From NCBI GenBank assembly GCA_002811645.1, contig PDIP01000069.1, forward strand, positions 18,618 through 82,617: 64,000 bases of DNA, written 5' to 3'. The notes beneath the pieces were generated by a model that searched no databases, was not told the DNA's origin, and was given only the letters and a program-made list of their open reading frames with translations. The stretch's first letter is position 1; the number at the start of each line of letters is the position of its first letter. The stretch comes from Corallochytrium limacisporum Hawaii. Taxonomy: Eukaryota > Protista > Pluriformea. Below are positions 49,468-54,190 of the stretch, one piece after another. Both the position numbers and the translations under genes were made by a program.

Positions 49468-50435
49468 CCACCCACCCAAAGACAATGTATACTCTCACTG
49501 ATTTCGCACATCCGGTCCCGCTAACACCAAGAACGTTAATACTACTGCCCGATAAAAATGTGCAAAGGTTTCTCAATCGGGGAGTACGCGGAGCTCCGTT
49601 TCGGGAAAGTCAACTGAGCCGGTACTGACACTTTGGGGAAATTTACTTCCTTGGAGGGGGTTTTGGTGGGCTGGGAGTGTGTGGTATGGGGTCAGCTGAG
49701 GGTGGGGTGGTACGAGGGCAACGGTGACTGAGAAAGACGATAACCCGCTCGGAAAAGGCAAGTGCAGAACGAGAATGTATGCACCCTGCGGTCTCCGGAG
49801 CGAAAGAGGGTGACCCGCCCCGGGGGGAGGGGTGTAAAGAGGAGCAGGGGAAACGGTGGGCCCGAGACGGGGAGGAGTCACTGTTCAGCAAAGCGCGCCT
49901 CCCCCCCCCCCTTCCACGAATTCGGAGCAGAGATTGGGCGGTGCGCAAGCAGAAAAAAATACCGGCGGCAGTGTGGTGTGAGTTAGGCAGTTGTTGGGGA
50001 TTGGTGGGGGGGGGTTTCCACTTGCGCCCTGCCCCGGCCCCTAGTCCCCCCGGTAGACGGGGTGAGAGATGGGTTGTCTCGGTGGAATGGGGCGGTGGGC
50101 CGGTGTGCCTGCCAGGTGAACAGCGTCAATGTGTTAGGCGTTGGTTAGTTTGGAGCGAGTCGAAAGGAAAAGGAACACAGCTCTTTCACTTGCTGCAACT
50201 GTCCCAGTGCAAGTCTCATGCTATTTGATGCGTTTGGGTGCGCGAGACTGCCTCTGCCGAGGGAAATCTGTGTTATGGAACAAGTCCACCTACAATAGTC
50301 TGGTTTGAGACCTATAGATACGACACACTGAGTCGCTGTGATAATGTTGAAAAGATATTTACGGATATGACGGAGTTAGCACAGAATCGGTAAGAGCAAA
50401 ACACCGAAAGGAATCGAGCAGAAACCACAGAAGGA

Positions 50436-53400
50436 ATGACAGAGACGCCGAGGTCCGGGGCTGCAAGCCCTCGGAGCCCGATGCACAAGCGGATTCTGCA
50501 TTTCTTCCAGAACCATCGCTTTGCAGCAGTCTGTGTCCTTTTCTTAGTGCCATTACTATGCATTGTTTCCATTGTGGCAGTAGTTCTTGGTCCAGGGGCT
50601 CCGGGTTGGCACTGGCCCGGTGATCCGCGCCGGCCTCCTCCTCCGCACCACGGCAACAGCACCCATCACAAACACCACTTGGACGAGACCTGTGCATTCC
50701 CGAAGAGGGCGAGTAATGACACTTTTGAACTACCTCAGTGCAAGGGCAATTTCATCGGTGACGTAGACGAGATTGCAAAGCAGGTGGCATGGATGTACGC
50801 CCCGGTCTTGCACTTCCACCCAAAGGAACAGTACTTCCTGCAGGACGTGAATGTCTGGTTGAACGAAAGCATGGTCTACCAAGAAGATCGTGCCCCGAAG
50901 GAGTACTCTCCAGAGGTCCTCTATACCACGGTTATGGGAGAGTACGCGCAGTTCAATGCCTTCAATTCATACATGAGCGTGTACCGGACTTATGAGGACA
51001 ACCTCGACGACAAAACTTGGCAGAACGTATTGAAGGGAGCACCGTTTGATGAGAATGGCCATTCTACAGCACCGATCTATTACTCTGCGTTCGAACAGAA
51101 TGGCAACCTGGTGCTCAGCTATCAATTCTTTTACAGTTGGAACGGCTGCACCGACCAAATCATAGATGTTCTGAACATTACTGAACGGAACTACACTATA
51201 GAATCTGTGAACTATGTGCTTTGTGATTCTGGTGCTCACGAAGGCGACTGGGAACATGTGAGCGTAGCGATCTGCCCTCAAGGAGACGTGTCCGCGAACC
51301 AAGAAGTGTTCAAGCCCGAGGATTTCAAGGTGAGCCAGGTCAGCTATAACCAGCATATGTGGAACGAAATCTACAACTGCGAGAACGAAGGTGAATGTAA
51401 TTTCTACGAGGGCAACACTACCCACATCAATGCTTATCCTGGACTGAATTCGCATGCGACGTACAGCCGCGTGTACGATGAGTCTGTTGTTTACTGGGCC
51501 TTCGTGCCCCCGGTGATTGCGGATCTGCGCGGTCTGTTCTTGGTTGATCGCACTGCAGAGAGTGACAAACTCTTTGTTCCGCGTCCGGACAATGTCGTGC
51601 GCATACCACGGCCCCATGAGCTGGGCAAGCATGATCTGATGAATTGGGTCATCTTCAAGGGAGAGTGGGGCGTTCGTCTTACAAATCAACCGCGAACCAT
51701 AACGTGCATGAACGGCACAGAGTATGTGGACTGTCCCTCTAACCAAGTCTTTGCAGAAGTCACTGGTATCCTGGGCATAGAGGAGGATTCTGAAGGAGAG
51801 ACGTGGCCCCGGAAATCGCCTGAAGCCCGGACACCCTTAGCCAGACGCCAGGGGGGAGACCATAGGGCCTACTCTGAGAATGACCAGGAAATGGTGAAAT
51901 CAATGGTGGAAGAAGTCGATGTGTATCGCCGAATGGGCGAGGCGGGCATCGATCCCCACATTGTTTCGACCCTGGCAATGTTACAACTCCAGCAACCACC
52001 ATCATCATCACAGTATTCGCAACGCAACGGTGCCCTCGTGTCTCTAGACGGCGGAGACACTGCTGCACCTCCTCTCGGGCCACCTGGAGAAGATGCGCCG
52101 CCCGGAGGGAAGAAGAAACACAAGCAGCGCAACGTCCTTGAAGATGCCCTGCGCTCACTGGCCACGCGTACGGAAAAATCACCAACCGGCGGGTGGATGA
52201 AAGACTTTGCCACATACTGGCAGGAAGGACAGGACGCACCAGTCAATATGGCACCGCCCCTGAATGAGGACGATTTCACCTTTCAAGCCGAGAGTTTCAT
52301 GGCCCGCTGGCATGGTTACGGATCTGGACAATCGTACTCAACTGATCGCACGTCTTCAGCTGACGGTATCCACGGCAATGGCATGACTTCCCTACAAAAG
52401 AAACCGCATACCGGCGCTATCGGTCGAGCCGTGACATCAATGCGATTTTGTCCAGGTGAGCGTGTGCTGTCATACTCGGTAGTCGACCGTGAACGCATGG
52501 CCCACTACGAACACTCAACGAGTCTGGTGTTGCAGGGAGTAGTCCTGCTGCTCGGTTTATTACTGTTTGGAATCTTTGTGTCGCTTCTGTTGCTTACACC
52601 AACCAGTCTGAGGGACATGCACGCTGTCATGAAGATCCATGGCGCCAAGGACATTATCAAAAACCCTGACATTCGGGAGAGCCGGGGCGCCCTGCGCACC
52701 AGTCGCAGTGTTAGGAGCAGCAGAATCAGTGGCCTGGGGCCGACGCGGCCCAGTGTACAGGTTACTGTGCCCAACGGCAACGACGCGGACAGCACGTGCC
52801 CCACCGACTACGGAACCATGGTAAATGGGGATACAAACCGCGACAGTGGTGATGCACTCTATGCAAACGGAGCACAGGATGAGGAATACAACGAAGATGG
52901 CCTAGAACGCCAGCCGTTGCTTTCAATGACGAGTGAGGAGTTTCTGGAGCCTTGGCCCGACACCTTGGGTCATTGGAAGGTCAAGCTCGGACACAAGAGT
53001 TCCATCCGCGTCGGTTCCCAGCATATGTGGTTACTGTTAGCTGGCTCATGTATTCTCATGGGCATTGTTTGTGTGCTGCACGAAAGCATGATGATTTTTG
53101 AAAGCGTCGGACAGCTGAGCCCAAGTCCGATGTGGACCAATATCAAAATCACGTTCGCGGTTGTTTTACCCTTCATTGGTCTTGCCAACGGTTTCTGTGC
53201 CTGCATAACAATTCTGTTTTGGGGTAATCGCTATCTGCACCCATTCGCAAATCGGCGAATCCAGAGGACCTACGAGGAGAGTCTGCGCACAGTGTTTGGA
53301 GTGGCTATTTCCATCGAAGTGGTTAGTCTTAGCCTAAGCGTGCTGATCACTGGAGTCGGCATATGGATGAGTGGCACCCGGGAGATCCTAGTGGATACGT

Positions 53401-53636
53401 GTGCACGGGCTGCGGTGCCAATCTCAAATGTCTGCCTTGATCTGTCCGTGGCCGGTGTCTCGAAGTTTGTGTGCGGTCGTGACATTCTGCATTTCTGCGA
53501 TGAGTGGGCTGCCGTTTACTTGAATCTCTTCCCCTGGGGCGGACTGCTGTTGTTTGTGGGACAGAGTCTTCTACTTTTGCTCACAGTGATTGCGCTTTGG
53601 AACAACATTTTCTATTTCGTTCTGGCGAAACTTTAG
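50436..53636 (+). CDS. Vps62-like domain membrane protein with a C-terminal myelin-proteolipid-like tetraspan module
   Basis: Vps62-like motifs YAPVLHFHPKEQY, YQFFYSWNG, HEGDWEHVSV, NSHATY, FKGEWG; six predicted TMs; C-terminal TC..VCLDL..GV.K.VCG..IL.FC. Confidence 0.85.
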   Translation: MTETPRSGAASPRSPMHKRILHFFQNHRFAAVCVLFLVPLLCIVSIVAVVLGPGAPGWHWPGDPRRPPPPHHGNSTHHKHHLDETCAFPKRASNDTFELPQCKGNFIGDVDEIAKQVAWMYAPVLHFHPKEQYFLQDVNVWLNESMVYQEDRAPKEYSPEVLYTTVMGEYAQFNAFNSYMSVYRTYEDNLDDKTWQNVLKGAPFDENGHSTAPIYYSAFEQNGNLVLSYQFFYSWNGCTDQIIDVLNITERNYTIESVNYVLCDSGAHEGDWEHVSVAICPQGDVSANQEVFKPEDFKVSQVSYNQHMWNEIYNCENEGECNFYEGNTTHINAYPGLNSHATYSRVYDESVVYWAFVPPVIADLRGLFLVDRTAESDKLFVPRPDNVVRIPRPHELGKHDLMNWVIFKGEWGVRLTNQPRTITCMNGTEYVDCPSNQVFAEVTGILGIEEDSEGETWPRKSPEARTPLARRQGGDHRAYSENDQEMVKSMVEEVDVYRRMGEAGIDPHIVSTLAMLQLQQPPSSSQYSQRNGALVSLDGGDTAAPPLGPPGEDAPPGGKKKHKQRNVLEDALRSLATRTEKSPTGGWMKDFATYWQEGQDAPVNMAPPLNEDDFTFQAESFMARWHGYGSGQSYSTDRTSSADGIHGNGMTSLQKKPHTGAIGRAVTSMRFCPGERVLSYSVVDRERMAHYEHSTSLVLQGVVLLLGLLLFGIFVSLLLLTPTSLRDMHAVMKIHGAKDIIKNPDIRESRGALRTSRSVRSSRISGLGPTRPSVQVTVPNGNDADSTCPTDYGTMVNGDTNRDSGDALYANGAQDEEYNEDGLERQPLLSMTSEEFLEPWPDTLGHWKVKLGHKSSIRVGSQHMWLLLAGSCILMGIVCVLHESMMIFESVGQLSPSPMWTNIKITFAVVLPFIGLANGFCACITILFWGNRYLHPFANRRIQRTYEESLRTVFGVAISIEVVSLSLSVLITGVGIWMSGTREILVDTCARAAVPISNVCLDLSVAGVSKFVCGRDILHFCDEWAAVYLNLFPWGGLLLFVGQSLLLLLTVIALWNNIFYFVLAKL

Positions 53637-54190
53637 GGAGAAGAGAACAAGGACAACGTCTCGCCATCATCACACTAAATATCATCCATAAATATATCCT
53701 TAATCTTGACTATGACACGTCCTCTTCATTGCCGCCATTGCTGTAGATTCTTAGTTGGATCTGGCAGGGATCCCGAATAGATTCGGAGAGCACGACTGCA
53801 GGATACACTAGTAGAGAGAGGGGTAGAGGCCCCGTTTTAGACGTCTTCTTCACAGAATGTCTCGAGGGTGTACATGAAAGGATGAAGATCTCTATTTTGA
53901 AACGACGCATTGAGGGGAACGGGATCATGGCCTCGAATGGTGCTTTGAACTACGCACTATTGCCCACTATCGCTTTCCCATGCCGCGTACGGGCGAAAAC
54001 GAATGTCTGGGCGGACGCAGACCAAGTTATCGCAGTAAAGCATCATCATATCCTTGATCCTTCCCCTAGTATGTGTCATCTCGATCGTTGGAATTTGACT
54101 GCTTGATCACTTCGCTCACTTAAGGCAGTCACTGTGTCGTCATCGAGCAACATGTCTTCTCGACTGTCTGTTTCACTTCAGAGGTAGCGA

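Follow-up and report, generated by a model that had tools for sequence, protein, structure and literature searches.

Within the 64,000-nucleotide stretch of DNA analysed here (the window), which comes from the unicellular holozoan Corallochytrium limacisporum, positions 50436–53636 (+) hold a single-exon open reading frame (ORF) of 1066 amino acids, free of internal stop codons and of N, that encodes an ectodomain of predicted NLP/Vps62 fold, a transmembrane (TM) helix, and a PLP-like four-helix module. An earlier reading made from the letters alone (the sequence-only reading) had rightly guessed a unicellular host and had suggested RNA-seq as a check for a single transcript. In each of two runs from two studies (X1 and X2, whose status as RNA was guessed), one gapless contig (50279/50281–53714/53709) spans the whole ORF, and read depth in both presumed-RNA runs is nil just beyond the contig ends at ~50280 and ~53710. 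A single unspliced transcript, with a probable extent of 50279–53714 (+), is therefore likely, and the gene is probably expressed. Compared with the window, a second sample carries nine coding differences, six silent and three substitutions, the latter all in low-confidence linkers. Two overlapping 8-codon upstream ORFs (50344–50370 and 50367–50393, +) lie inside the probable 5′ leader, where translational damping is possible. The neighbours at 374–47657 of the window are intron-poor housekeeping genes with no evident link to this one (E2 enzyme, Mot1-type SNF2, DUF92, Set2, eIF4G-like, LRR protein, MFS transporter, P4-ATPase, and NFX1), along with a papain-family protease whose pro-region is unusually long (600 aa).

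Hydropathy identifies six hydrophobic segments, at residues ~29–51 and ~697–722 and then at ~863, ~903–930, ~953, and ~1031–1059, the last four being those that the sequence-only reading had pointed out. The topology it proposed, with a lumenal sequon-rich domain between the first two segments, needs N-x-S/T sequons to be confined there, and their distribution agrees: all seven (residues 74–426) fall between segments 1 and 2 and none afterwards. The N-terminal segment (50520–50588, +), preceded by basic residues, is a signal-anchor or uncleaved signal; the claimed signal-anchor is a peculiarity of this copy, and in many full-length homologues the N terminus is instead formed by a segment resembling a signal peptide. 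Beyond it lie the core of the lumenal or extracellular Vps62-type domain (residues 99–449; 50730–51782, +), with conserved cysteines and five of the seven sequons, and a low-confidence insertion (residues ~452–580; 51789–52175, +) inside the predicted NLP-fold domain, where homologues are much shorter. A conserved segment (residues 582–602; 52179–52241, +), which includes W595 and P602 and reads G-P-T/x-G-P in homologues, would close the fold. The stalk carries a juxtamembrane cysteine, Cys672 (52449–52451, +), invariant in 32/32 alignment rows, and leads to an extra transmembrane helix, TM-A (residues ~697–722; 52524–52601, +), with a conserved Pro722 at its end. The cytosolic linker (residues 723–860; 52602–53015, +) is disordered and basic at its start, is not conserved, and has no common signalling motif; an acidic dileucine-type motif within it (residues 824–829; 52905–52922, +) is missing from the paralogues. 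In the C-terminal PLP/M6-like module (residues 861–1066; 53016–53633, +), helices are modelled at pLDDT mostly 80–95, and hydropathy, sequons, and the model together give a PLP-type arrangement in which both ends of the four TM helices are cytosolic and the second outer loop is large. This loop, placed between helices 3 and 4 as the sequence-only reading had it, bears four cysteines (C989, C1000, C1013, and C1021, spacing 11-13-8; 53400–53498, +) whose counterparts are invariant in 40/40 sequences.

The Vps62-like label originally attached to the ectodomain is supported. This protein scores 17 bits against Vps62 (PF06101), under the cut-off of 22.1 bits, while P0002, P0003, and L011 score 27.7, 22.7, and 40 bits, and the Atlas score for Vps62 is 0.95. 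On the predicted model, the ectodomain very probably has the NLP (Nep1-like) beta-sandwich fold of plant-pathogen toxins, recognised with Foldseek E-values >1e-3 and 10–16% identity; the VIA alignments stop at model residue 526–527, or residue ~598 of the protein. An HEGDWE motif (residues 268–273; 51237–51254, +), in which H268, D271, and E273 are conserved, is the counterpart of the NLP heptapeptide, the role of which has been described (PMC12513423, PMC13159263). The exact GHRHDWE heptapeptide is absent, the ectodomain reading A-H-E-G-D-W-E, and Pfam searches of this protein and its relatives gave no match to PF05630 (NPP1). NLP proteins bind GIPC sphingolipids (PMC6743777); a fold shared with them shows no function.

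The relationship of the four-helix module to PLP/M6 is indirect. The profile search that the sequence-only reading had recommended failed for the protein itself: neither it nor its two paralogues match Myelin_PLP (PF01275, gathering cut-off 23.8 bits) in Pfam, the best fused-type member reaches 16.6 bits, and PDB sequence searches with the module were blank, no PLP structure being found in the PDB by sequence. Language-model features (Atlas) place Myelin_PLP in all of the top 18 clusters at 0.90–0.91, a ranking that is weak alone because the recognition value lies under threshold. A profile of four fused modules, with no PLP sequence included, found 78 proteins among 1.84 billion, and three of these, short proteins that stand alone, exceed the Myelin_PLP cut-off over almost the full length of the model (55.7, 44.0, and 31.8 bits). 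Reversed and window-shuffled controls scored ≤18 bits against 38–96 bits for real sequences. The reciprocal search of the whole genome with the three stand-alone proteins recovered exactly the three fused modules, and HHalign of 24 fusion-only modules against the stand-alone proteins gave 99.2% (E 3.4e-19, 199 columns), the profile-level homology covering all four helices. No other tetraspan family, the outcome named beforehand as telling against the assignment, competes; Tetraspanin appears weakly in 1 of 40 rows. By these four routes (language-model features, transitive HMM, reciprocal genome search, and profile-profile alignment), the module is very likely homologous to PLP/M6, through a link that is transitive via Pfam and protist intermediates. 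The by-eye match of a C-terminal stretch to human PLP1 carries little weight, as that stretch is not conserved in the paralogues. M6a has an IPYAS motif and palmitoylated cysteines (PMC8129562); an IPYAS-type motif and palmitoylatable cysteines before helix 1 are absent from this protein and both paralogues, although the motif is present in the stand-alone members and partly in the fused protein P0045. Given these two missing hallmarks, the lack of a Myelin_PLP match, and the transitive link, we place the module outside the Pfam family, as a sister subfamily to PLP/M6 or a remote homologue.

In the Corallochytrium genome (286 contigs, 24,109,830 bases), both paralogues (781 and 805 aa; Clim_evm2s90 and Clim_evm53s202 in EukProt) share the layout without the long insertions, and whole-genome profile searches found no stand-alone PLP-like gene. 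The ectodomain alone occurs in three further genes (L011 3088–4317 and 7217–8599, −; L012 724–2250, +). The L011 pair is in tandem and has no obvious signal peptide, and in the L012 copy the C terminus consists of a Ser/Thr stalk and a hydrophobic tail resembling a GPI-anchor signal. The genome also encodes two Tweety proteins and one full-length prominin (L021 1366–2736, +; L022 1453–2724, −; L023 1363–3939, −; Pfam 72, 69, and 307 bits).

The search for the same architecture across eukaryotes, also suggested at the outset, showed it to be widespread yet unannotated. Both domains occur together in about 28 proteins, and since these include two same-genome paralogues and about 25 others, the architecture is not due to chance. 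Beyond Corallochytrium, the fusion is found in green algae, red algae, a diatom, and a rhizarian (named sources: Chlamydomonas schloesseri, Edaphochlamys, Micractinium, Erythrolobus, Timspurckia, Seminavis, and Leptophrys), and the named public records are hypothetical or uncharacterised. For the relative L015, whose gene contains introns, the exons were read one at a time and the joined model was left out. The sequence-only reading had seen a bearing on the pre-animal origin of the family; an origin before animals stands, but because the architecture occurs in algae and a rhizarian, its scope is pan-eukaryotic and not holozoan. In the tree, the Corallochytrium copies lie outside the green-algal clade and group with red algae and diatoms, where branching is not settled. 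A Diacronema lutheri record (P0015, EukProt) probably reflects contamination of that proteome, as its strongly supported position is within chlorophyte-type sequences. Early-eukaryote descent with many losses is the simplest reading of the distribution, though old eukaryote-to-eukaryote transfer may be an alternative. The nearest protist relatives of M6 are the stand-alone proteins at L020 8001–8861 (from Thecamonas), L019 449–1432, and L016 23–814, which already carry PF01275 in precomputed database annotation; the Thecamonas trahens protein (AMSG_03863, XP_013759766.1) is encoded on a 558-kb genomic scaffold. P0045 (L018 177–3743), a fusion in which helix 1 is preceded by an IPA-type PLP motif and which has a ~550-aa disordered tail, is a possible intermediate between the fused and stand-alone forms. 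PLP/M6 has been called 'novel metazoan' (PMC5620054) and described from arthropods to mammals (PMC3438117). Neither this architecture nor non-animal PLP proteins are described in the literature covered, a scope outside which the main PLP phylogeny (PMID 19497142) and most subscription papers fall; within it, both parts are known kinds, and their union and spread are new.

The best explanation is that the protein belongs to a family of secretory-pathway or plasma-membrane proteins that is unannotated and widely spread among eukaryotes. Its architecture comprises an N-terminal signal or anchor, a glycosylated, disulfide-rich NLP-fold domain of Vps62 type, a stalk, an extra TM helix, a cytosolic linker, and a bundle homologous to PLP/M6 whose outer cap contains four cysteines. 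By analogy, it could be a lipid-recognising organiser or sorter of membranes, a head-group binder mounted on a PLP-like bundle, a proposal to which we give slightly less than an even chance. The NLP-fold crevice (H268, D271, and E273 with H307 and H340) may bind a cation and hold, on the lumenal or outer face, a glycan or the sugar head group of a glycolipid (a GIPC-like sphingolipid). The bundle would oligomerise in sterol/sphingolipid-rich patches and shape or organise membrane as does M6a, which tubulates it (PMC3230579), at the cell surface or on endolysosomal/vacuolar membranes. Animal PLP/M6 and the apusomonad stand-alone proteins would be the same bundle minus ectodomain and extra helix. 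Counting against this proposal are the missing direct Myelin_PLP match, the transitive link to PLP, the sub-threshold Atlas recognition value, and the low identity and high Foldseek E-values for NLP; the protein also lacks the juxtamembrane cysteines whose palmitoylation directs M6a to rafts.

The same anatomy could instead serve a lumenal metal-dependent enzyme, such as a lipid or glycan hydrolase, whose helix bundle presents or moves the lipid substrate in the manner of a Tweety-like lipid handler. We consider this unlikely: the NLP fold is not known to be catalytic, the module lacks Tweety's long outer helices, the TTYH score is close to helical-bundle background (a designed bundle gives 12.3), and there is no sequence link to Tweety, a weak test given the thin Tweety profile. 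The large glycosylated ectodomain on a stalk, the three paralogues in a holozoan, and the action of M6 proteins at cell surfaces, where they induce protrusions (PMC3230579), would also suit a cell-surface receptor for adhesion or recognition (in colony formation, mating, or contact with prey or a wall) that binds glycans in trans on another cell or wall and signals through the linker. Yet the family occurs in walled algae and diatoms of very different lifestyles, the linker shares no conserved signalling motif, and yeast Vps62 behaves as candidate cargo for Erv41-Erv46, the receptor for ER retrieval (PMC4298680), indicating an internal role; a receptor is distinctly improbable.

It is very improbable that the module is a non-PLP tetraspan bundle that acquired its four-cysteine loop by convergence or was drawn in by profile drift through hydrophobic helices. 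That no fused member has a direct Pfam match above cut-off, that the IPYAS motif and N-terminal cysteines are missing, that mouse M6a spaces its second-loop cysteines (C162/174/192/202) 12-18-10 (PMC3438117), and that the fused profile itself picked the three stand-alone proteins would all fit such a bundle. However, the Pfam membership of those proteins does not depend on the way they were selected, controls with shuffled sequences fail, no other tetraspan family competes, and P0045, a fusion, keeps an IPA-type motif ahead of its first helix. The predicted NLP fold and heptapeptide-like motif might finally suggest a membrane-tethered cytolysin or defence protein that releases its domain to damage foreign membranes, but the protein is anchored by five or six helices, is conserved in free-living algae and an osmotroph, and is of Vps62 rather than NPP1 type, with large insertions and the low identity given above; we regard this as the least probable of these readings.

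PLP/M6 proteins rank among the main membrane proteins of myelin and neurons, and debate continues on how they act at the molecular level; the occurrence of homologues in Corallochytrium, an apusomonad, a diatom, a rhizarian, and both green and red algae moves their origin far back. [quoted passage not shown] Tweety and prominin would share this unit, and may share with the present protein a 1+4 helix topology with a disulfide flap ahead of the last helix; the NLP-fold fusion would be the surviving link, and animal PLP/M6 would have been trimmed of ectodomain and first helix. If so, myelin proteolipids would be members of a single ancient superfamily whose proteins bind lipids and bend membranes. 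The partner fold, known for sphingolipid head-group binding, suggests, by Rosetta-stone logic, that the family originally served to handle glycolipid-rich membrane, and gives the obscure Vps62 domain a fold-based candidate function. Chlamydomonas and Corallochytrium, the latter reportedly transfectable (bioRxiv 10.1101/2020.11.12.379420), make study possible without animals.

Among known systems, PLP1/DM20, GPM6A/B, and Drosophila M6 (PF01275) share with this module four helices with cytosolic ends, a short first and a longer second outer loop with four cysteines, and profile homology via the protist stand-alone members; the Corallochytrium module differs in being preceded by a ~600-aa ectodomain, an extra helix, and a cytosolic linker, in lacking IPYAS and the palmitoylatable cysteine cluster, and in its shorter C2-C3 spacing. 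The stand-alone protist proteins share the 11-13-8 spacing and reciprocal HMM matches, and two of three have an acidic dileucine motif, but they lack the ectodomain, keep IPYAS/VPYAS and cytosolic-loop cysteines, and pass the Pfam cut-off. Vps62/Tda6 proteins resemble the ectodomain in the motifs A-P..H..E and H-x-G-D-W-E, with matches at profile positions ~229–432, the C-terminal part and not the beta-tripod repeats, whereas the present protein adds conserved cysteines, long insertions, and fusion to a multipass membrane module, and this copy is sub-cut-off. Unlike NLP proteins (NPP1, PF05630; PDB 3ST1, 3GNZ, and 6QBE), it is not a soluble secreted protein, and its domain is larger, at 10–16% identity. 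Compared with the Tweety/TTYH and prominin five-helix proteins, it has no long outer helical hairpins and no sequence similarity detectable with the thin Tweety profile.
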